From Zygnema circumcarinatum SAG 698-1b (lineage: Eukaryota; Plantae; Zygnematophyceae): a stretch of 64,000 nt of DNA. The stretch spans positions 1,426,001 through 1,490,000 of the forward strand of contig CM074820.1 in assembly GCA_037447605.1 (NCBI GenBank). The letters run 5' to 3'. Shown one piece after another: positions 18,333 through 62,405 of this stretch (position 1 is its first letter; each line of letters begins with the position of its first letter). Both the position numbers and the translations under genes were made by a program. Under the pieces are notes generated by a model, which was not told the DNA's origin, searched no databases, and saw only the letters and a program-made list of their open reading frames with translations.

Positions 18333-19634
18333 TTGGACGCGCCCAGCCGCAGGCCGGCCTGGCCCTGGCCCCCTGACCTTCTGACTTTTCGCAGGACCGA
18401 ACTCGGCACAGGCACAGGCCAAAACAAAATGGGGAGCATTTTGGGTGTTATCCGACGGCGGACATCGCCTTGAATCCGCGCTGGAGTCCACGTGGCGTTA
18501 TCCTGGCCGTCTAACCCCACGCCCTGCCTCTCTGCCTGCCTGCCTGAAAGCGCCCGCCGCCCATCGTCTCCCGTCTTGTCCCTGCCGTACGGTTCGTACC
18601 CCCTCGAGCCGCGCTTCGCACGAGCGAGGCACTGTCCTCGAATCAGGATCTGCCATTTGTTATCTCGCACGAGCGAGTCAGTGTGCAGGCGGCCGCCCCC
18701 CTCTCACGCCCGCTCCGCCTGGCGCCCCCTCTCTCTCCCTTCCTCCTTCCCTCCCTCCCTCCCTCCCTACCTCCCTCGTCCTCCCTCGTCCTCGCCCGCC
18801 TGGACGTACGGGCGGAGCTTGCGGCCATGAGGGCGCAGGCGTGAAGTTGTCGAGGTACTGTATGCGGAGCGGGCGATGGCTGGGGGGGGTGGGGGGGGGG
18901 GGGGGGGGGNNNNNNNNNNGGGGGGGGGGGGGGGGGGGGGGGGTGGGGATGCTGAGGGAGTGGCCGATGTGAAGGAGTTGAGTTTATAGTTGAAAGTGTC
19001 TGCGACGCTCCACTGCAACGTCTGTTCGGATGCTCGCGTCACATCAGGAGCATTTGTTGGAGACGTAGCGGGTGCTGCGCTGCTGTCTTTCTGTTGCGAT
19101 TGTGGAAAGTGGAGCATGGATAATGACTGCAACGTCAAGCTGTTTGCATGCAGGAGGCTCAAGTACTGCTGTCAGAGGTTGATTTCTTTACTTATTTTTT
19201 AGTTCTTTTGTAGTTCCTTACTGCAATTTCGTTCATTTTGTTTCAGTAAACAAAATGCTTGTTTGAGCGCGAAGGCTGCTACAACATGCTACAGCATGAT
19301 CGAAGTAAAACATAGCACTCGACGAGTACTTTCGACAGAGTAATTTTTCTCTACTTCTTGTGATGCACGTCCGAAAACTTTTTGTTTTATTGCATGACTT
19401 TAGAAATGTGTTGCGTTCCTTCATTTACCCACAGATCAAGTGAATTTCCAACTTCAGAGAATCGTATTATGCACTATGTAACCGGTGCAATGTGCATAGT
19501 TGGAGGTGCTGGGAAATCGTGGCGAATGTGGCGTCATGGAACTTTGACAATAATGCTTCTAAGATCTTTCCTCACACCAAGCACTTGTTTTCTGTGCAGA
19601 AATCCTTGTTACAGTGGAACAAGTGAGGACTAAC

Positions 19635-23676: not shown

Positions 23677-25309
23677 AGCTGTATCGGACAGATGAACCGA
23701 GAAAAGGGAGTGGGTGGGTGGGGGGGGGGCGCGGGCTGTGAGGGGGAGAAACATTCACGAGTGTGAGGAAAATAAAAGAAAGAACAGTGAAAGCTCTTTT
23801 TATTCAACAAAGTCAAGTCAGAACATTGTTGAAATTAAGTTCATTTCTGACACAAGTTGAAATGGGGTAAAACCCATCATTTAAGCCTGTAACCTGCTTT
23901 CTTACTTTCGCGCTTTTGAAACCAGCCTTGCGTAACAATTCCCCTTTACTTGGCTCTTGAAGGTGATTACTGCATCACGGGCGGTTTTTTTAATTTTACA
24001 AAGCAACTAATTATGGGAAAATCCTAAAAAACAAAAAAAACCCGGAGATCAGAAAATGTAAGTGCCGCTACCGGGTGTATCTGAAACCAATCAGCGTTAG
24101 CAGTGCTCATGTCTGAGGGGCTTATAGGGCTTCCCCAATTTTCTTTTTGACAAAATTTTAACCGAAAAGGGAAGTGAAAGAATTAGCCAGTTGCTATGCA
24201 GAATTTGATTTAGCGCTGTACGGAATTGATGAGGCAGAGTCTGTGGAATCTTGCATGGCTAGAATATGGAAATTTTGAGTCCATTGAAATTCGAAAGTCC
24301 AAAACGACATTCAGGGAGGGGGTCCACTTTACTTTCGTTCCAGCACTCGGCAATGACGGCTCGCCATGTGTGTGAAATAAATCCAAAAGGGTATGTGGCT
24401 GGCAACCATTGGGTTAATTGTAAACTATCAAATAGAAAAAGAAAAGCCCTCTCCCTCCCTAACCTTTCCCTATCCCTCTCCCCCTCTCCCTCTCCCTCTC
24501 CCCCTCTCCCACTTTCCTTCTTTCCCTCTGATATTCCCCTTACCTTAATCTATTGTTTTCATCTTCAGTGAAGGAGACCTCTCTGGCAACCAACCTCCTG
24601 TTTCTTTCCTTTCTATTTGGAGTCGGCCGGAGCCCTTGCCTTGCAAGATCACGGAGAGTGTGTTTACATTCAAAACAAGTCAAAATTCTCATTAAAACAG
24701 GCTACAATATTGCTGCGGATACAACGAGTGTTGCAATATCTCGGGTTGGAAACTTTTCCAAGTGTCAAAAGCTACGAGCAGGGGTTGGGCAGTGAAGATG
24801 CTTGCATTCCAATCATGGTTTGCAATGGAGCGAGAGAGTCCGACCATGCATTTTCATGTACAGACAGACATTTTGGTCTTGTAAGAAATAAGAGAATTGC
24901 GGCCTGTTCTTATAACATCGTCTCTAAAGCACGGGCATCCATAACATTCATTCCATATGAAACAGATTTCAGAAACCCAAACGCACACAGAGTCGTACGG
25001 ACAAGAAGATGCATACTCATGATCATCATCATGCTGTTGAACACAAACTACAAAAGGCGGCCTTGCGAACATGATCCAAACCTAGCGCCGTACGTGCCTT
25101 GGGAAGTGTCAAGTAAATTTTTCCTTGTCCTTTTGAAAACACCACTCATCGGGAACTTCAAGTGTAACTCTTACAATCACCCTTTCACACCTTTTCTTTT
25201 CTTTTTTTTTCTTTCCGCGTATAGGCAGGAAGGCAGGCAGAGATGGGATGAGAGGGAGGCGTACGGTACAGCAGCGGGAGCGCGTGCTTCCCGCACCCTC
25301 CTCGGCTTG

Positions 25310-25537
25310 GGAGGGAGGGAGGGAGGGAGGGAGGAGGGAGGGAGGGAGGAAGGGAGGGAGGAGGAGGAGGGAGGGAGGGAGGAGGGAGGGAGGGAGGGAG
25401 GAAGGGAGGGAGGGAGGGAGGGAGGGAGGGAGGGAGGGAGGGAGAGGGAGGGAGGGAGGGAGGGAGGGAGGGAGGGAGGGAGGGAGGGAGGAGGGAGGGA
25501 GAGGGAGGGAGGGAGGGAGGGAGGGAGGGAGGGAGGG
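25310..25537. repeat. (GGGA)n purine-rich simple repeat
   Basis: Tandem GGAG/GGGA units; source of the SLPP/REGG ORFs. Confidence 0.95.
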
Positions 25538-26471
25538 CGCTGGCGGGACGCGGGAGCAGGCGGGCCTCTCTCTCCCTCCCTCCCTCCCTCGGGCCATGGC
25601 GGCCGGCCGGCCGGGCGGGCTCCATTCCGTACGACCCCGTAGACGTTTGTACTGTACGACTTTGTACCGGACCGTACCATACGGTACGCGGCGCTCCGTC
25701 CGCGAAATACGGTTGACTTTGTCGTTTTCCATCGACCGGAAGCCCTGCAGATCCCGAGCCTCAGGTTCAGAATCACCATCATAAGTGGGCGGGCCATAGA
25801 AGAAAGATATGGTACGAAAAGGAGAACTACAATCTAATCGGAAGTCGTACTCTTGTAAAAAACTATAAATATCTGGAAAAAGTACGTGTTCTATTCTCAG
25901 ACGTAACCAAAAAACGAAATACCGTACGGACAATTTTTGAAATTTTTTGACATGCTCTAATCGTGTAGTTTATGTACGGCCAAGGGCTTTTACCCTGCTT
26001 CCACGTGGACAATCGGACGACGCCGATGAAAAAAGTCGCATCGGACGGCTCGAATTCACTTACGTTCTCTCCTTTTCTTCTCGAGGCACCACGTGTCAAT
26101 GCCATCGTCAGCCACATGCTGACACGTGTTGAAAAAGCGACGGCTGAGAGTAAGCTGATCGCCTCCGCGAATCAGCGCACTCCAAGATCCTGAACATCGT
26201 CGAAGCCGGCAATTGACCACCAGTGCCACCGACCACAATGATTTTACACGTGTTATGTCAGGCACAAATTACGGCAAGACCGTACGAACAAACCGTGACA
26301 TGAATAATAGCCTGTGCGATGCTGCCACGTGTCTTCAATCCGGCAAGTCACGACAGGTTTGGCCCACGCTACGCGACAAGCGCCGCCCGCCCCTCCCCTC
26401 TTGTCGGGGCGGAGGGCAAGGCCGTCCTCCCGTGCCTTCACCGAGCGGGCCCGCGGCCGATTAGGCCAGCC

Positions 26472-28217
26472 ATGGCGGCCATGGCGGCGATCCGCCATGG
26501 GCTCTTCGCTCACCCGGCAGCCGCTGCACTCCTCATGCTGCCTTCCATATACCTGGTCTCCCTCGCCGTCTACTCGCTGCCGGATCCATGGCTGCGCTTC
26601 GCCAACGCCTCCTTTACTTGGCTTCCCTTTCCACACTCAACCGAGATCTATTCTCGCCCTGGTTGCTCCCTCAAGGCCCGCGTTGCGCAGCGCTCTCAGC
26701 TCCATGGAATCTGCTGGGCGAAGCGCGAGCGCGACTGCTTCTCTCCCCCCCCGCAGGGCCCGGCCATGGCGGATGGAAGCTCCCTCCTGCAGGAAAAGCT
26801 GCGGCGGCACGAGGTCATGCAGAGCCGCTGCACGGCCTCCGTCAAGGACTGGGCGGCGCTGGTCGCGGGAGAGGAGGCTCCTCCTGACGCCACGTGTCAG
26901 TACGTGATAGGGCACCCTCAGAGCCAAGGCCTGGGGAACCGTTTGGAGGCCGTGGTCTCCCTCTTCCTGTACGCGCTGCTCACAGAGAGGGTGCTCTTAG
27001 TGCAGGATGCAGAGTTTCTGCGCCTCCTCTGCGACCCCTTTCCAAACGCCACGTGGCGTCTGCCGGAGAGCGCGGATCAGCAGGTGCAGGAAATGGTGCA
27101 GCAAGGCCCACACTTTGACGGTTTTTTCAGCGGCAGGGAGGGTGGGAATGCAAACCAGAGTTTGAATCATGTTTTCGTGGATTGGGCTTATATTTACAGC
27201 CATGGCGGACAGAATGTCTATTGCGATGACGCGCAGGAGGCGCTGAAAGGAGTGCGGTCTCTGCTTATAAGATCGGATCAATTCTTTGTTCCGGGCCTGT
27301 TCCTTATCTCGAGCTTTAGGGCAGAGCTTGAAGCGCTTTTCCCCGATCGATCGCCGTTCTTTTACTTAGCGCGGTACATTGCGAACCCTAATAACCAGCT
27401 CTGGGAGAAGATCACCAGGCTCTATGAAAGCGAAATGATGCACGCGGATCAGCGGGTAGGTGTGCAGATAAGGCAGTGGGCTAAGCGTCAAGAAGAGGTG
27501 CCCATTGATTTCATGATGCACTGCATCACCAACATCAGCCGAGTTCTCCCTCCGCCCATTTCGTCAGAGGAATGGAGTCGACTCTGGAAGGGGGCGCAGT
27601 CCGGTGATTCGCAGTTCAATTGGCCGGATGAGGAGAGAGCTCGCATAGAGAAGGTTATCACAAATGACGATCCAAAACGAGTGGTGATGCTGGTTACTTC
27701 GCTTCACCCGCATCATCCCGCAGATTTCCAGAAGCATTACCGTGATGGAGTTGCAGAAGACGGGAGCGTGGTCACTGTGCTCTCTCTCAGCAGTAACCAG
27801 CAGGAAATCCATCACCTTTCAGCTGACGAGCAAGCGCTGACGGAGATATTCCTGCTCAGCTTCTGCGATGTTCTGTTTACAACCTTCTTTTCCACGTTCG
27901 GATATGCGGCTGCTGGATTGCAGGGCCGGCCTCAGTACCTTGTCGATGTATATGCTGCAGTGGGCCAAGAAGACATTGTGAACGGGCAGCATCCTGCCTG
28001 CACGAGAGTGGAGTCCGGCGAGCCCTGCTTCCACTTTCCCCCTCATGAGAGAAGCTGCAAAGGGGCAACTGCACCGGAAGCAAGCATAGAGCCGCCTTAT
28101 CTTCAAGCATGTCTTGACACAAATAACGGCACAGGACGGCGATTGAGGCTCGGAGAGGTTCTGTCCGACCACGTGAGAGCAGGATTGAAGCATGGAATGA
28201 ATAGGAAGCTTATTTAG
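26472..28217 (+). CDS. Xyloglucan/galactoside 2-alpha-L-fucosyltransferase (GT37, FUT1-like), intronless, type II membrane anchor
   Basis: Single ORF (track 26319..28217; likely start at ATG 26472). Motifs CQYVI...GLGNRLEAVVSLFLYALLTERVLLV, LCDPFP..W.LP, SDQFFVPGLF, RVGVQIR, ALTEIFLLSFCD...STFGYAAAGLQG and EPCFHFPP. Confidence 0.93.
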   Translation: MAAMAAIRHGLFAHPAAAALLMLPSIYLVSLAVYSLPDPWLRFANASFTWLPFPHSTEIYSRPGCSLKARVAQRSQLHGICWAKRERDCFSPPPQGPAMADGSSLLQEKLRRHEVMQSRCTASVKDWAALVAGEEAPPDATCQYVIGHPQSQGLGNRLEAVVSLFLYALLTERVLLVQDAEFLRLLCDPFPNATWRLPESADQQVQEMVQQGPHFDGFFSGREGGNANQSLNHVFVDWAYIYSHGGQNVYCDDAQEALKGVRSLLIRSDQFFVPGLFLISSFRAELEALFPDRSPFFYLARYIANPNNQLWEKITRLYESEMMHADQRVGVQIRQWAKRQEEVPIDFMMHCITNISRVLPPPISSEEWSRLWKGAQSGDSQFNWPDEERARIEKVITNDDPKRVVMLVTSLHPHHPADFQKHYRDGVAEDGSVVTVLSLSSNQQEIHHLSADEQALTEIFLLSFCDVLFTTFFSTFGYAAAGLQGRPQYLVDVYAAVGQEDIVNGQHPACTRVESGEPCFHFPPHERSCKGATAPEASIEPPYLQACLDTNNGTGRRLRLGEVLSDHVRAGLKHGMNRKLI

Positions 28218-35385: not shown

Positions 35386-35907
35386 GAACAAAAGAAAGGG
35401 AAAAATAAATCTGTGTTGAGCTCCAACTATTTGGGGCGCTTCTGGATGAAGATAAGCTTTTGGTGTTTAAACATGAAACCCCTATTAAATATCCTTATGG
35501 TCCGTGTCTTTCTTTCTTCCTTTGCTGTTGTCCAAAGCTCTGCCAGCTCGAAGGGTTCACTATTACTTTTCTGAAGGGCCATTTTCACATCTGAACATTT
35601 CTCGCCTCACAGGGCGCCCTCAGCTGCAGCCCCTCCCCTTGAGAGGCCCCTGCCCGACCCTGCCCAGCAATTCAGAACACTCATCAATGCAAACAGCGTC
35701 GCCAAACTGCATCCCATGATGTCACTGATGTAACATCATCCCATACATTAGCAAACACGGAGAGCTTGTACAAAGGGTGCAGGGGTTAGCTTCCTGCAAA
35801 TGCTAAGGTCAACATGTAATCTCCATACTTAACATCTCCAAGGAGATGTAAGCCCAAAAACAGCCCACTCCTCTGTAATCTGTTTGGTGCGTGGAAAGGC
35901 CCTTTGT

Positions 35908-35982
35908 AGAGGTCATGAAAGTTCAAGGCCCCGCCTGCGACTGGCGCTTTCTGCCGAGCCTGTCATGTATTCACAATCCTCT
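35908..35982 (-). promoter_or_regulatory. SECIS element (form 2) in the SelT 3'UTR
   Basis: Minus strand AGAGGATTGTGAA-TAC-ATGAC-AGGCTCGGC-AG-AAA-GCG-CCAGT-CGC-AG-GCGGGGCCT-TGAA-CT-TTCATGACCTCT. It contains helix I, the AUGA/GA quartet, helix II, an apical AAA and a mini-stem. Confidence 0.88.
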
Positions 35983-36096
35983 GCGCCTCCACACATCCCT
36001 CCCACACCATGCATGAAGGCATGGTGCATTGCAGGAGCTGAAAGGACATGGCCATGGCCGTCCGCTTTCAACGCCATGATTGAGCAGCTGAAAGAC

Positions 36097-37994
36097 CTAA
36101 TCCCGGGTCCGCAGTGCAAGACGAGTCTGCTCAATGAGCTCAGCCTCAGACGGCATGCGATTCTCCGCCAGCTTGGAAAATATCTGCACGGACAGATCAT
36201 TGTAGTCACTAACAGCAAGCACTCTCCATCACCAACATATGAATTACTTCAGTCGCTCCAGTATCAGCATCTGTATTTTGGAACCTGCTTTCAGAGCAAT
36301 CTAAACTTTTCCCTTTCCCTCCTTCTACCAGCTAGGTGGTGCTCTGCAATGCAGCCTTACCATCCTCCCATTGTAGGATACTTCGAAGGCGCCAGTGCTA
36401 AGAAGCCCGCTGTGCATCACATTCCCAAGTATCCAAATGCCAGCTGCCGCCCCAATCTTGTTCTGCTGAATGCTCATATACCACGATGGGGGCTGAATGA
36501 TGCCCAGAGCTGGGAATATGGCATCACCCGCAAATGTAATGGCTAAGCCTGCAAGCTGCCCTGCTCCCACAAGGCGGGAGAGGAGAACATTCTGCGGAGG
36601 GGGAGGATGATTTGCGAGAGTAACCGGCACATCTGGAAAGTGGACATGCAAGACCTCCTTTACCTGCATGGCCACATTTCTGCAAACGCAGGACAAAAGC
36701 ATGTTATACCTACCTCGTCTCTCGTAAACAAAATTTAAAATGGCTGAAGAGCAAGCCTAACGGTATCTCTGTAAACACTAATAGCCTGCGCTTACCATGG
36801 TGTGTGCTGCTACCTGTCTGTGCTACTGCTTGATGACTGACTGAGTCTAACCTACTGATTACTTATGCAGGGCAGCTGTGGTTTGAATGGCCTGAACTTA
36901 ACCAGTAAATGCATGCCAGTGTCCTAACCACATAGCCATACGAACAATATTCATACGTCAGTGCAGAGAGGTCCTAAGTGAACAGATTTAGGCCTATAGG
37001 AGATCAGGGTGATGAGGAGGCACAGGCCGAAGGACCACATCATGCCGCATACCAGCGCATACTTCTGAACATGAATTTATGCAGGGCTATGGAATATTGC
37101 TTAAGTCAGGCCCTTAAAACATACTGCTGCCCCTGCTACAAAGTCGTACAAGACTCAGAAGGCATCCTCTAACTCAACAGAAGTAAGGAACAGCCTAAAA
37201 GCAGCCTAAAAGACAGAAAGCGAGACTGTATAGGAATGGAAAACAAAGAACAATAGTAAGGGTTACCTGTAAGATCACGAAGTGCAGAAAGAAATATGGA
37301 TGTTGCCATTCGCACTTCCTTCCGATGTGCTCGCTGCGACCAACGGGCGTTCACTTTCCATCTTGACCTGTCAATTGAAGCCAGCGATAGGAATTAGCTT
37401 CAGGTGCGCCTTGGGAGTTTCAGCGCACAAGTAGAGGCTTTAATTTCTCCTTTTGCTGATCCATCAGTAAGGGAACTGATATAGTACCGGCTGAATATGT
37501 GAGCTGCCTAAAGATTGATTGTATTATGAGGCTGAAAGCTTTAAGAGCCTCGCTGAGATTGTTAATTGCATATAAATTAAGTCAGGGTTTTTGAATCACA
37601 AGGCGAAGGCAAGGGTTAAAGCTTAGTACCAGACGAAGGTAGTGGAAGCGAAGAAACTGTATCCACGTATTTTGTTGGTAGATTTAGGACTGTTTATGTT
37701 TCTTCGAGTAATACTGGCTCGTTAGCTGTTAGCTGTTAGATGATATTGGCAGCTAGTCGCTCTACATGGCCAAAACTGGAATCGGATCTGTTCTGGTAAA
37801 CTTCCACAATAAAATAAATTGTCAACAAGCAGACTGAGGCAGGGATGCGAGGTGGAGCCAGCCCCCTGCAGGCGCACCTGAGGGTCCGCCTCCGCGTCTG
37901 CCCCCGGCGGCTGCAGCGCTCGCCAGACGTCGCCTCCCAGCACGGCGAGCAGCAGCGCCGCCAGCAGCGCCACCCCTCTCCACTCCCCGGCCAT
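36097..37994 (-). CDS. SELT: Selenoprotein T (SelT) with Sec-encoding UGA at 37277-37275
   Basis: Exons 37994-37878 (signal peptide), 37367-37267 (...NIHISF-C-T-S-U-SYR), 36679-36361 (NVAMQVKEVL...LANHPPP...LLSTGAFEVSYNG) and 36183-36097 (IFSKLAENRMP...TAG). The UGA aligns with the second residue of the SelT CxxU/CxxC motif, and a SECIS lies downstream. Confidence 0.93.
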
Positions 37995-38257
37995 GCCTGC
38001 AGACGCTCCCCTCCCCTCCCCTCAGGCAGGAGGCGAGGCCTTGCAGGCGCCACGAGGGCACATGCTGCGGCCATGGGGGGGGGACCCCCAGCAACATGTG
38101 CCTGGCAATCTTCCAATGGCGACATGACACGTGTACATACATGCCTACGTGGCGAGCCACAATTGGAGAGGCTCGGCCCGGTTCGCGGTGAAGGCCCGGC
38201 GCGCTTTCTGGAGGGCTCTCCTCTCCTGGCAGGCGGGCAGGCTCATGGACGCCTGGC

Positions 38258-38402
<145 letters not shown>

Positions 38403-38622
38403 ATGGATGGTGAGCAGCATGGTGTGATGGTCATGATGGTGATGGTGATGCCCATGCATGCATGCATGTCGAACTGGCATGTTGCTGGATGATGGATGAT
38501 GATGATGATGATGATCTCCGCGCGGCGGCGCTGTGAAAGGGGCGAAGGATGGGCCTTCTAGGAGGAGTCACAGGACGGAGCGGAGGGGAGGGTGCCCGCC
38601 CCCCGCGGGCAGGTAGCTCGCC

Positions 38623-41988: not shown

Positions 41989-42564
41989 GCAGGCAGAGTG
42001 CATGGAAGGGAGGGGGAGATGGAGTGGGAGCATGTACAAAGCCAAAATCTTTAATTTATCTTTTTCTTAACCTGTTCGGTTTTACGGTACATGACGTTTC
42101 CGAATCATCACCTGCAGGTACAGGCGTTCACATGCAGTCTTAATTCTGTAGTCTGAAACTGAGCAGGTGCTGGTAGCTGTCAGGGCAAGCTGCTCCCCTT
42201 AGAGAGGAGGTCATAGAGATGGTCATAGGAGCTTAGAGACTCAGTGTATGGACCGGGTCGAGAAAGAGAGAGGGCGGTGGGGGGCGGGGGGGGTTGGGGT
42301 TGGGAGGATACATGAAATCAGAGTGGCTTCAGTTGACAGTGTTTTAATCATTTTTGTCTTATCACTTGTTTATTTAAAAAATGAAAGCGACTTAGAAAAA
42401 CTCTTTCATTTGTTTGTCCACAACCTCTGCTGTGTTTAGGTGCACCGTGGTTTACAGAGTTTTTTGAAGGTAAAGACTTTTTGTACAGTGAATTCACGGG
42501 CCCCGTTTCCGAGGAAGGAATCATATAACCGACAAACTGATAGCTAACAAAACCAATTTACATC

Positions 42565-54832: not shown

Positions 54833-55081
54833 ATGGTCAGCGTAAAGGTGCTGCTCTTCGCGCGTGCGAGGGAGCTCGCCGGCGTGAGCGAGGCCGCGCT
54901 CTGCCTCGAGGAGGGCGCGTCCACGGCCGCGGTCTTCCCCGCGCTGGCGGGGCGGTTCGGGGCGCTGGAGGAGCTGCGGGACTGCCACGTGCTGGCGCTC
55001 AACTGCAGCTACGTCACGGAGCCCGTCCCGCTCAAGGACGGGGACGAGGTGGCGATCATTCCGCCCATCAGCGGGGGCTGA
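54833..55081 (+). CDS. CNX7: Molybdopterin synthase sulfur-carrier subunit (MoaD/MOCS2A/CNX7), intronless
   Basis: 82 aa, MVSVKVLLFARARELAG...DGDEVAIIPPISGG*, with the canonical C-terminal Gly-Gly and a strong start context (ccgccATGG). Confidence 0.96.
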   Translation: MVSVKVLLFARARELAGVSEAALCLEEGASTAAVFPALAGRFGALEELRDCHVLALNCSYVTEPVPLKDGDEVAIIPPISGG

Positions 55082-55162
55082 GGAGGGGCTCTATGCGGGC
55101 CGTTGAACGGAGGTAGGACAGTTAGGGTTTTCTGTGCAGGTTTGCAGGTTCGGGTTGGTTGC

Positions 55163-58100
55163 ATGGAGGAGGAGGAGGAGGAGGAGGAGGAGGAGGAGGA
55201 GGGGGGGGGGATGTTGCCTGCGGATGTTCTCGCTCACATCTTTACAGCGGTTGGAGCGAAGGGGCTGGCTATGGCAAGCTGCGTTTGCACACTATGGTGA
55301 GTGAAATAGTGAAAACTGCAGCTATGTTGATGCTTTGAGTGCGGTTTTTTGTGGTATTCTTTAATTTTCTATGTAAATGTCTTGCAATTCCTCGCAAGAG
55401 CTGGTGATTTCGGACGCTTATAAGGTGCTCGTAATGCATGAATCATTCGCGACTTATGGACTTTACAATGCGACAAGCACCCTCAATCTTATCGATGTTT
55501 GTGCCGTGTTTAGTCGCGACAGGGTTACGCAATCTGATGAGTAAAGCTGTGACTTACAGCAAAAGCTTCACAAAAAACGTTATGGTTTGTCCAAGATTGC
55601 GCAGTTTAAAATGGACCCTCGTCGACCTCTTTTCTCTTACCCCTGATCTTAACCCTAACCCTGATTCTGTCAGTGCAGGAGGGAGGTTGCTTCAGCAGAC
55701 CAGTTTTGGCGGCAAGCGTACGTTACTGAATTTGGGTTAACTTATCCGCACTCAGTTGTGGAAGTTACCAACAATGGGCTCTCACCCTTCAACACTAAAT
55801 CTGAAGGTTCTGGAAGAGTTTCAATCTCTCCCAACTTGCCGACTGGAATCTGCAGTTGGCGCCATCTGTTTATCAAAGCATGTGATTCTCGGCACAGGCC
55901 ATACTTGTGCCTTGCGGGAAAAATGAATTACGCTATGGAACAGATAGCAGCATGGCGCGTTTTAGTCAGGGCCGTAGAAGGTGAGGGGACGCGTGGAGTT
56001 CTGGGAAAGGAGGACACGTGGCAGGCTTTCCCTGCACGCTCTATCACCAAAGCGGTTCAGAGCATTTGGCTCACTTTCTGTCTCCCGGATGAAGTGATGA
56101 TGCAATATGAAGGGCTCGGAACCCACTATGACATCATCGTGCAGGCGAAGACAGTGAGTCATTCTAGGGGCGGATTTTTGGGAAATTGGAATTTAGGGTT
56201 TGGCAATGGAGAGGCTTCTGGTTTGAATGGCACGATGAAGGATTGTGACGAAAAGGTTCACAAAACAGCAAGTACTTTGGACCTTGAGCTTTATCGCCTA
56301 GTTGAAGATGAGGAGATTTATGCCGATGACTGGTTTTCGGTGATGAGAGTCTTTGGATGCGAGCTTATTAAAGGCCATGATCTCTCCTCGGATGAAGCAA
56401 TGATCTACCAGGCACATGCTACAGGTTTATATGCATACAGAGTTCCGTCAGGTATAGTTTTTCCTTTTAGGCTCCATAGGCTTTGAGTGAAATCTGAATG
56501 GGCTTTCTGAGAAGCATGCAAGGGACGATTGTACAACTTTGTATTGAGCTTGTCTATAGTCACTTATGCATGCAATCACACATTTTTTTTTCATTTTCTT
56601 GTCTTCAAGCCTCAATGTCAACTTTCTTGGATTGCTTGGATGCAGAAAACTTGAACTCAACATCAAATTTGCAGCATCCTACGTTAAACGTCATCGCATA
56701 CCTGCATGCAGAGCAGCTTCTTCCTGCCCTCCCATTCCCACTTATTCAATCGCTTACAACTTGTGGCCATCTGAACTTGGAGGCCGGAACTTCATTCAAG
56801 CTATCAGAAGGAACTAGTGAATTTGGGACTGAGACAGATGATTTGCAGGCAACAGAGACATTGGAGGAGATGTCGTCGCCAGCATCATCATCAGCTGCTG
56901 CAACATGTCTTACTAACTCTATTTCTCATGGAGAGTGTGGATACATTTCGAGAGCAGGAGTGGAGGGGCTGCCAGTTTATGTGTATTTGGACTTCACTGC
57001 TGTCTCTGGTGAGGATCAAAAGATCTCCAGCATGATCGAGTGAGCTTAGTAGAGTACAAACTGTAGCATCTTTGCTGTTCCTATGAGCATAGAAACCTTG
57101 GAAACCTAAAACGTTGATTTAAAGATATCCAGATATCACTTTCTGCATGCAGGCGGTTCCATGATTGGCAGTTGCTGTGCTGCATTATGGCCACGTCTTG
57201 CCGATTCCACCTCTTCGTTTGAAGGCAAGTAGAGCCACTCCTTTTATGTCATGCTTTTGTGAAAGGCAGAGGAGAACATGGTCGCTAAGGGCAACTTTCA
57301 TATAAATGGAAGCTGGGGCGTAGAATTCACATTCGCTATTGCAATGGCTTCATCCTTCACCCTCTTTCCCTTCCCGCACATGCTCTACCCTTACAACCTG
57401 TACCAACCTCGCATTATCTCAACTGTTTCCATGCTCAGATGTCGGAGCCATATGTCACTGGGACGGCCCTGTGGAAGGCATTACCACAGGCATGACGCTG
57501 GCTGAGCTGGCAGAGGGGGAAGCTCTTGCAGACATCACTCTCCTTACAAGGCAAGGGCACTCTCTAAACCTTCTTCCTCCTCGTGTGTGCCTAGACCACA
57601 GAGTGGTAACATCTCTCTCTCTCTGCCTAACTCCCTCTCCTGCAGTGTAGGGTTACTTAGTTGACACTCCAACTTGCTGATGTCACCAGCCAGAGTCACT
57701 AAAGCAGTATGAAACCTTCTGTTTGCCTGTTACAATGTGGCAGTCATGGAGAGCTCGTGCTCGGTAGAGCAGGAACGGAACTGTGGCAGGGAGCAGGGGA
57801 GCCACATACGCGGCTACACTTCATTCCAGACGGCTCTAGTGACGGCCTTTTTGCAAATGCCGTCTCGCTATGGCCATCACATCATCCCCGCAAGTCTGCG
57901 AACGATTTGGAGGCACTCGAGTCGACAAGTGGTCGACTGGATTCTGCTAAAGCGGCCGTCAAAGTAGTAGATCGAGCTGATATTGGCATAGGGAAGGTGA
58001 GCAAGACAATGGAAAGGGGAAGCGAAATAGTTGCGAATTGTGAGGCAAGTTCAAGCTGTGGGCTTAAGCCGAGTGAGGTCAGCCTAGAAAATCATGGAAG

Positions 58101-58344
58101 TGATGTACTGGATGCACGAGAAGACATAGATCATGTGATGCAGCGAATGCGGGACTTGTCAGTGAGTCATCGAGATGAAAGAATTTCAGGGAATGTGACA
58201 CGAGGAAGCAGTGAACCGTTGGCAATTACGGATTTATGTGGGCAAGTAGACAGGAAAACACGGAACTTTGTTGTAGCGGAAATGCGAGGGACCATCAGCC
58301 TCCAACTGACCCCGAATGCAATGCGCCGACTTTTGCCTCTCTAA
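55163..58344 (+). CDS. F-box domain protein of unknown function
   Basis: F-box LPADVLAHIF...LAMASCVCTLW|REVASADQFWRQAY is split by a GT-AG intron (55276-55677 region). Long open exons follow; two downstream introns need GC donors. The C-terminal model is tentative. Confidence 0.72.
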
Positions 58345-62089: not shown

Positions 62090-62324
62090 AGAAAATCAAA
62101 ATAATACACGAGTTAAGAGAGACACAAAACTTTAAGAAGCAACAATTGCTTTGTGAACGAGTCAGCCAGTGGTTCTTGAAGTCGGTGATCCCTGACTTCA
62201 ACTTCTTGCGGCAGAATGGACGGTGAGATTCGCAGCACGCGAAACCTCGCTAAGGGATGTGCGGGGAATTGCAAAATGTAGTAACGGCTTGGCCAGAGGG
62301 CAGCAAAAGGAGATTCTGTCGGTG

Positions 62325-62405
62325 TGATGACAGTGGGATTTGAACCCACGCCCTTTCGGACAGGAACCTTAATCCTGCGCCTTAGACCAACTCGGCCATA
62401 TCATC
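62325..62405 (-). tRNA. trnL-AAG: tRNA-Leu(AAG)
   Basis: GATGATA..TGTCATC acceptor stem; D arm TGGCCGAGTTGGTCTAAGGCG; anticodon arm CAGGA-TTAAGGT-TCCTG; long variable arm; GTGGG-TTCAAAT-CCCAC T arm; TTTT terminator about 15 nt downstream. Confidence 0.97.

Follow-up and report, generated by a model that had tools for sequence, protein, structure and literature searches.

A SelT gene with an in-frame UGA probably decoded as selenocysteine in a streptophyte alga of zygnematophyte type

The window, i.e., the whole 64-kb stretch of DNA that was analysed, carries on its minus strand a gene that, with high confidence, is a genuine selenocysteine (Sec)-encoding SelT gene located in the nuclear genome of a zygnematophyte-type streptophyte alga. 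An in-frame UGA at codon 70 of this gene very probably encodes Sec. The SelT mRNA is made, is spliced as modelled, and keeps the UGA.

Gene structure and expression

The SelT gene consists of four exons (Table 1), which together yield a spliced coding sequence (CDS) of 624 nt with 207 codons and the stop codon as codon 208. The CDS contains a single internal stop, the TGA of codon 70 (37277–37275), and terminates with a TAG (36099–36097). The string TTC TGC ACT TCG TGA TCT TAC AG/GT, in which the slash marks the end of exon 2, is the reverse complement of 37265–37290 and places the TGA in the context H-I-S-F-C-T-S-U-S-Y-R; from exon 2 into exon 3 the frame carries on as AG/A AAT GTG. The first-pass annotation of the window had described this motif with its in-frame UGA and a frame running properly through exons 3 and 4, and both were recovered in the 624-nt CDS with its one internal stop. 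The redox centre, C67-T-S-U70, is encoded by exon 2 and is found close to the N-terminal end of the predicted thioredoxin-like domain. Kyte-Doolittle values above 1.3 (19-residue windows) were obtained at start residues 1–10, 104–118, and 148. With a hydrophobic N-terminus and a hydrophobic insertion within the presumed thioredoxin-like fold, the protein is predicted to be membrane associated.

Table 1. Position of the SelT gene, its SECIS element, and a further gene in the window.
Feature	Position	Strand	Evidence
5' UTR, at least to 38100	37995..38100	-	RNA contigs: X2 37876–38100, X1 37876–38064
In-frame upstream TGA closing the SelT frame 5' of the ATG	38024–38022	-	sequence
Exon 1, coding part; 39 codons, ATG 37994–37992, hydrophobic signal/anchor-like N-terminus	37878..37994	-	sequence, RNA joint, hydropathy
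Intron 1; 510 nt, GT..AG	37368..37877	-	joint 37367/37878 in X1, X2, and X3
Exon 2; 101 nt, redox motif F-C-T-S-U-S-Y	37267..37367	-	RNA contigs over 37267–37365, 0 other letters
In-frame TGA, codon 70, probably read as Sec	37275..37277	-	alignment: TGA in algal relatives, Cys in land plants
Intron 2; 587 nt, GT..AG	36680..37266	-	joint 36679/37267 in X1, X2, and X3
Exon 3; 319 nt, most of the Rdx/SelT domain and hydrophobic middle segments	36361..36679	-	RNA contigs, homologues
Intron 3; 177 nt, GT..AG	36184..36360	-	joint 36183/36361 in X1, X2, and X3
Exon 4, coding part; 28 codons and TAG	36097..36183	-	sequence, RNA contigs
3' UTR, at least to 35755 (X2 contig longer)	35755..36096	-	RNA contigs at exon depth
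Form-2 SECIS core	35913..35976	-	Rfam SECIS_1 match, pair table
Extended helix I of the SECIS	35896..35989	-	minimum-energy fold
Single-exon gene, GT37 (xyloglucan-type) fucosyltransferase	26319..28217		PF03254

The RNA evidence consists of contigs from three runs (X1, X2, and X3), each belonging to a different study, that were placed on positions 35700–38100. Nine RNA runs share one organism label, and six of them contain 72–83% of the words sampled from the stretch; a fourth run, X7, yielded no contig on 35700–38100. In all three runs the splice joints were found exactly as predicted, each of them of the GT..AG type on the minus strand. The summed word depth amounted to about 150–680 in the exons and about 10–33 in the introns, which corresponds to a 10–30-fold exon excess, and the exon 4 contigs extended through the 3' UTR at exon depth (X1 to 35814, X3 to 35755, and X2 past 35700). 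One X1 contig contained an extra joint (37787/37878) inside intron 1 at a depth of 16.7, which was seen in this run only.

A check of exon 2 by RNA-seq had been proposed in the first-pass annotation, which named transcripts skipping or editing the UGA, or reads with TGC or TGT, as evidence against Sec. Exon 2 including the TGA was contained without a single difference in contigs of all three runs (X1 record 3, X2 record 7, and X3 record 12). No other letters or indels were reported for the SelT contigs of these runs and no joint left out exon 2 or the final 12 nt of it, a result that applies to assembled contigs, from which rare variants drop out.

Conservation around codon 70 and annotation in relatives

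When exon 3 (106 aa) was used as query, 553 proteins were retrieved at E ≤ 0.001 from a set of 1.84 billion representatives, with a best value of 5e-29. A word-index search for a near-identical public protein of 58–185 aa for this exon found none, and a truncated model of the gene is not publicly recorded between these lengths. Many of the exon 3 matches start at a methionine that aligns right after the Sec position, which is what ORF callers produce when they resume behind a UGA. Full-length homologues carry the Pfam domain Rdx (PF10262) and are named selT-like. The three SelT coding pieces, searched apart, had no match in Pfam; because the Sec codon and the introns divide the 74-position Rdx model into parts, PF10262 was assigned via the homologues.

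In the alignment, two algal transcripts share the U of position 70, and Selaginella, Salix, and protein P0003 have C there; the motif C67-T-S-U70 is matched by CTSU, CTSC, CSSC, and CASC in the homologues (Table 2). Conservation extends in frame to either side of the TGA. Overall identity was 50% to the algal transcript L001, 47% to the Spirogloea model, 44% to the Mesotaenium model, about 38% to transcript L008, and 36–41% to land plants. These comparisons support the window gene as a SelT orthologue with a predicted U where the land-plant homologues have C. The statement of the first-pass annotation that SelT homologues of land plants carry CxxC agrees with the alignment, in which labelled land-plant homologues that retain the motif have Cys at the position of U70.

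Five further algal SelT sequences have a TGA at the position of codon 70 (the first five entries in Table 2). The four transcripts L001, L002, L007, and L008 among them retain the TGA.

Table 2. State of the redox motif in algal SelT sequences and in labelled homologues.
Sequence	Source	Motif region
L001/L002	transcript contigs	HISFCTS-TGA-SYK
L003	metagenome scaffold	HISFCTS-TGA-SYK, then intron
L005/L006	GC-rich algal genomic contigs	HVAYCSS-TGA-SYK
L007/L008	transcripts	HVSYCTS, stop, SYR
L009	genomic contig	HVSFCTS, stop, SYG
P0005	Selaginella moellendorffii, selT-like protein (XP_002963506.2)	CTSC
P0034	Salix suchowensis (KAJ6345314.1)	CASC
P0014	Nymphaea thermarum (KAF3789460.1)	CASC
P0013	Chenopodium, SelT-like	gene model without the motif
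P0002	Spirogloea muscicola (SM000030S11346)	model without U-S-Y-R
P0004	Mesotaenium endlicherianum (ME000132S00430)	model without exon 2
P0063	Netrium digitus	truncated transcript ORF

The nearest labelled relatives of the window SelT are the gene models of Spirogloea muscicola and Mesotaenium endlicherianum. According to the alignment, the Spirogloea model is devoid of exactly four residues, namely those encoded from the Sec codon to the end of the motif, and the Mesotaenium model, which has the N-terminal GGDVWRALQ signature in common with the window SelT, misses the whole CxxU exon. Both models are best read as the outcome of annotation software avoiding a stop, and a TGA would be expected at both loci. 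Truncation or mis-splicing by standard annotation, which the first-pass annotation had anticipated for the window gene, is seen in these two relatives.

Such models could also be taken at face value: the mRNA might escape the UGA through editing to a Cys codon or through alternative splicing, giving a functional Cys-containing or shortened protein. The omission of the Sec region from both public models would fit this explanation, as would the low-depth alternative joint in intron 1 (X1 only) and the fact that assembled contigs may hide minority forms. It nevertheless appears extremely improbable, because the high-depth contigs of three runs carry exon 2 and the TGA unchanged and without exon skipping, and because the TGA is also kept in the transcripts of the algal relatives. 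An mRNA in which the UGA stays in place and is decoded as Sec is the preferred reading.

The SECIS element in the 3' UTR

The Rfam model SECIS_1 (RF00031) matched positions 35976–35913 of the minus strand in its full length of 64 positions, with a score of 25.3 bits, which is below the Rfam gathering score of 35. The associated E value of 0.016 counts all 4227 Rfam families over the 701 nt searched; since it spans all of these families, a value of about 4e-6 applies to the same 701 nt for a family named in advance. No other SECIS_1 match at E ≤ 10 was detected in the whole window on both strands (128 kb). The element begins 120 nt past the TAG, lies on the same strand as SelT and within the RNA-covered 3' UTR, and is separated from the upstream UGA70 by about 535 nt in the SelT mRNA.

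A form-2 SECIS downstream of the TAG, with an AUGA/GA core, an AAA, a GCG/CGC mini-stem, a long helix I, and one mismatch in helix II, had already been recognized in the first-pass annotation, and all of these parts were found again. AUGA (35966–35963) on the 5' side and UGA (35925–35923) on the 3' side are aligned to the AUGA and UGA of the model. The AAA (35950–35948) follows 12 nt beyond the AUGA, and the mini-stem is formed by 35947–35945 with 35939–35937. Helix II contains eight standard pairs, and helix I is long in the minimum-energy fold, in which it reaches out to 35989/35896. The element has helix I, the AUGA...GA core, helix II, the AAA, and the mini-stem in common with RF00031, but differs from it by a score under the gathering score, a G.G mismatch within helix II, and an A.G at the top of this helix. 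The folding energy of the SECIS region did not differ significantly from that of shuffled sequences (z = -1.2). As it is indistinguishable from shuffles, the case for the SECIS rests on its pattern, its position, and comparison with relatives. A hairpin that begins 10 nt downstream of the UGA in the spliced transcript was considered as a Sec-redefinition element. Its energy of -24.1 kcal/mol was not significant (z = -1.4 against mononucleotide shuffles), and such an element therefore is not claimed.

The 3' UTR of L001 contains a SECIS_1 match with 28.3 bits. This SECIS and that of the window have in common a spacing of 12 nt from the UGA-C to the AAA as well as a GC mini-stem. Between these two sequences, the only ones in this comparison, 8 of the 18 model pairs differ in both partners and yet remain paired, and six of the eight are located in helix II. 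The L001 element has GUGA as opposed to AUGA in the window; a G preceding the UGA has been described for SECIS elements of green algae/Ostreococcus (PMC2375036). Weak SECIS_1 matches were found downstream of the SelT sequences in L005 (19.6 bits) and L009 (19.2 bits), and L007/L008 had no SECIS_1 match at E ≤ 5 in the Rfam search. The L003 contig stops short of the 3' UTR.

If the UGA were a true stop, the locus would represent a decaying pseudogene or give rise only to an N-terminal peptide of 69 residues, and the resemblance of the hairpin to a SECIS would be accidental. The SECIS score under the gathering score and the non-significant folding energy could be explained in this way. This scenario is nonetheless very unlikely, because only one internal stop interrupts 207 codons distributed over four exons and the 137 codons downstream of it are conserved, as indicated by the 553 homologues and the 50% overall identity to L001. 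Also, a TGA recurs in five other algal sequences, the spliced SelT mRNA is abundant, and the SECIS is unique in the window, correctly placed, and matched by compensatory changes in L001.

Read-through of the UGA by a selenium-free route, i.e., near-cognate or suppressor decoding as Cys, Trp, or Arg with a hairpin that has no role, has a similarly small chance of being correct. The UGA occupies precisely the redox position at which SelT has Sec in other eukaryotes and Cys in land plants, the SECIS architecture is kept with covariation, and Sec decoding has been documented for this group of algae (PMC6627142). A variant genetic code with UGA as sense codon was rejected in view of the location of the TGA at the Sec/Cys redox position and of the SECIS. 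The two other stops that were checked are TAG and uninformative on a variant code. Decoding of codon 70 as Sec remains the explanation adopted here.

Phylogenetic placement, proposed decoding, and comparison with known systems

A maximum-likelihood tree of 55 SelT sequences grouped the window SelT with L001, Mesotaenium, Netrium, and L003 (SH-aLRT 81) and placed it outside the clade formed by Selaginella and the angiosperms (SH-aLRT 99). Among the sequences of this embryophyte clade whose N-terminal region was read, all that retain the motif have Cys. Besides SelT, the window contains a single-exon gene for a GT37 fucosyltransferase (Table 1), whose protein is only 29–33% identical to any labelled land-plant protein. 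Together, the SelT tree and the GT37 identity point to a streptophyte alga of zygnematophyte type and not to an embryophyte. The description of the genome as land-plant-like in the first-pass annotation holds in so far as the organism is such a streptophyte, but does not extend to an affiliation with the embryophytes.

This first impression, along with the presence of a GT37 fucosyltransferase gene, could suggest that the DNA stems from a true embryophyte that kept Sec, or from an algal contaminant contig in a land-plant assembly. Sporadic Sec matches in bryophyte transcriptomes have indeed been recorded, and were ascribed to contamination (Liang 2019). Both possibilities have a minute probability in view of the grouping of SelT with the Zygnematophyceae and outside the well-supported embryophyte clade, and of the low identity of the GT37 protein to its labelled land-plant counterparts. 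Contamination is further contradicted by the SelT transcript, which was present at about 300x word depth in runs of three studies with one organism label and thus belongs to the sequenced organism. The preferred source of the DNA is a zygnematophyte-type alga itself.

Tentatively, and with somewhat less than an even chance, the genome might be assigned to a late-diverging zygnematophyte (Desmidiales). In the transcriptome of Closterium lunula neither Sec machinery nor selenoproteins were found, desmid transcriptomes contained 0–2 selenoproteins, and it was left open whether desmid genomes keep a Sec system (Liang 2019, PMC6627142). If the alga were a desmid, the SelT gene described here would help to answer this question, and the Sec-to-Cys switch of plant SelT would fall strictly after the split of Zygnematophyceae and embryophytes.

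In eukaryotes, Sec is decoded with the help of SBP2, which binds the kink-turn core of the SECIS and brings eEFSec with Sec-tRNA(Sec). By analogy, the SECIS in the SelT mRNA would recruit SBP2 and eEFSec carrying Sec-tRNA(Sec), the UGA of codon 70 would be decoded as Sec, and the 207-residue protein would be completed. The predicted product is a membrane-anchored, thioredoxin-like oxidoreductase of the Rdx family with a Cys-x-x-Sec centre, which, as in the SelT proteins that have been studied, may act as an ER-type thiol/selenol oxidoreductase. A tRNA-Sec was not found in the 64-kb window, where tRNA-Leu(AAG) is the only tRNA present. That this genome encodes the Sec machinery is inferred from its relatives; complete Sec machinery has been reported in the literature for the genomes of Mesotaenium and Spirogloea.

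The biology is not new, since the retention of Sec decoding in streptophyte algae has already been published (Liang 2019, PMC6627142; PMC2375036; PMC13578239) and has been repeated for tRNA-Sec in a 2026 review (PMC13578239). Sec use in the streptophyte Mesostigma and loss or Cys replacement in land plants were described by Lobanov et al. (2007; PMC2375036), who also reported Sec-containing SelT accompanied by a SECIS in Ostreococcus and the diatom Thalassiosira. The accepted picture is unchanged, and the value of the present analysis lies in a sound re-annotation: it provides a clean gene model, backed by transcripts, for a selenoprotein that is missed or mangled by automatic annotation in this algal group. 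In addition, it contributes one observation to the question of which share of the selenoproteome the closest algal relatives of land plants still had shortly before the whole system disappeared.

In comparison with the SelT of green algae and animals, the window SelT has the same predicted layout, with the CxxU motif right after a beta-strand (H-I-S-F-C-T-S-U), a hydrophobic N-terminus and hydrophobic middle segments, and the conserved STGAFE...FSK C-terminal part. Like green-algal SelT it combines a Sec that is probably UGA-coded with a 3' UTR SECIS featuring an apical mini-stem (PMC2375036), but it is the streptophyte orthologue, being closest to the Zygnematophyceae (44–50% identity), and its SECIS has AUGA in contrast to the G-UGA of Ostreococcus. 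To the SelT-like proteins of land plants it is orthologous over the whole length, including the context F-C-x-S-[C/U]-S-[YF]-[RK], whereas the land-plant proteins have Cys (TGC/TGT class), do not need a SECIS, and constitute a clade of their own. With its Sec, the window SelT would correspond directly to the SelT-like gene with Cys that is common to all land plants, and these may have inherited the same gene with Cys replacing Sec upon loss of the Sec system.

SelT gene models in relatives and a minor splice form

The public gene models of the selenoprotein T (SelT) orthologues in two other Zygnematophyceae leave out the Sec region. In the model of Spirogloea muscicola (P0002; SM000030S11346) the four residues U-S-Y-R, which are Sec and the next three residues, are left out, and in that of Mesotaenium endlicherianum (P0004; ME000132S00430) the entire exon encoding the redox motif CxxU is left out. 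Both models probably need to be re-annotated as candidate selenoproteins.

Within SelT intron 1, one contig (depth 16.7) assembled from the RNA run X1 contained an additional GT..AG joint, followed by retained intron sequence. This form, whose support comes from a single run at low depth, is minor and is probably either an unproductive isoform or an intermediate of splicing. Immediately upstream of the SelT 5' end there is a long (GCATGG)n microsatellite, which gives rise to spurious long ORFs on both strands (see table).

RNA matches, UGA region, and simple sequence

A permissive Rfam scan of the whole window detected no second match to the SECIS_1 model. Sec decoding in the region of a proposed MoaD-F-box fusion, which spans one UGA, is therefore without SECIS-like support. 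The sole tRNA gene detected in the window by ARAGORN and Rfam was a tRNA-Leu(AAG). A sub-threshold match to HYMAI, a mammalian lncRNA region (E = 0.0019; 36.3 bits, where the gathering score is 80), is probably compositional. Many unrelated miRNA models matched a low-complexity repeat on both strands, all far under their gathering scores. Because this repeat is simple and palindromic, such matches arise by chance. Short N runs within G-rich or CT-rich simple sequence, translated as XXXX in the ORFs, likely reflect either masking or small gaps in the assembly.

Coordinates of the features discussed (window positions)
Feature	Position	Strand	Evidence
N runs	near 18950, 48330, 60250
GA/CT-rich GGAGGGAGG-type repeat	25250-25600
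GT37 xyloglucan-type fucosyltransferase ORF	26319-28217	+	PF03254
Segment within SelT intron 1 (additional joint)	37788-37877	-
Additional joint	37787|37878		X1 contig
Spurious ORF	37822-38397	-
Spurious ORF	37845-38492	+
(GCATGG)n microsatellite	38254-38390
HYMAI match	42159-42388	+	Rfam
Proposed MoaD-F-box fusion	54833-58344
tRNA-Leu(AAG)	62324-62405	-	ARAGORN + Rfam, 58.3 bits

Relationship of the GT37 fucosyltransferase

The long GT37 ORF consists of a single exon and encodes 632 amino acids as listed, although its true start may lie further in. It shares 43% identity with an unlabelled Logan protein, and its best labelled relatives are land-plant enzymes, with an identity of only 29-33%.
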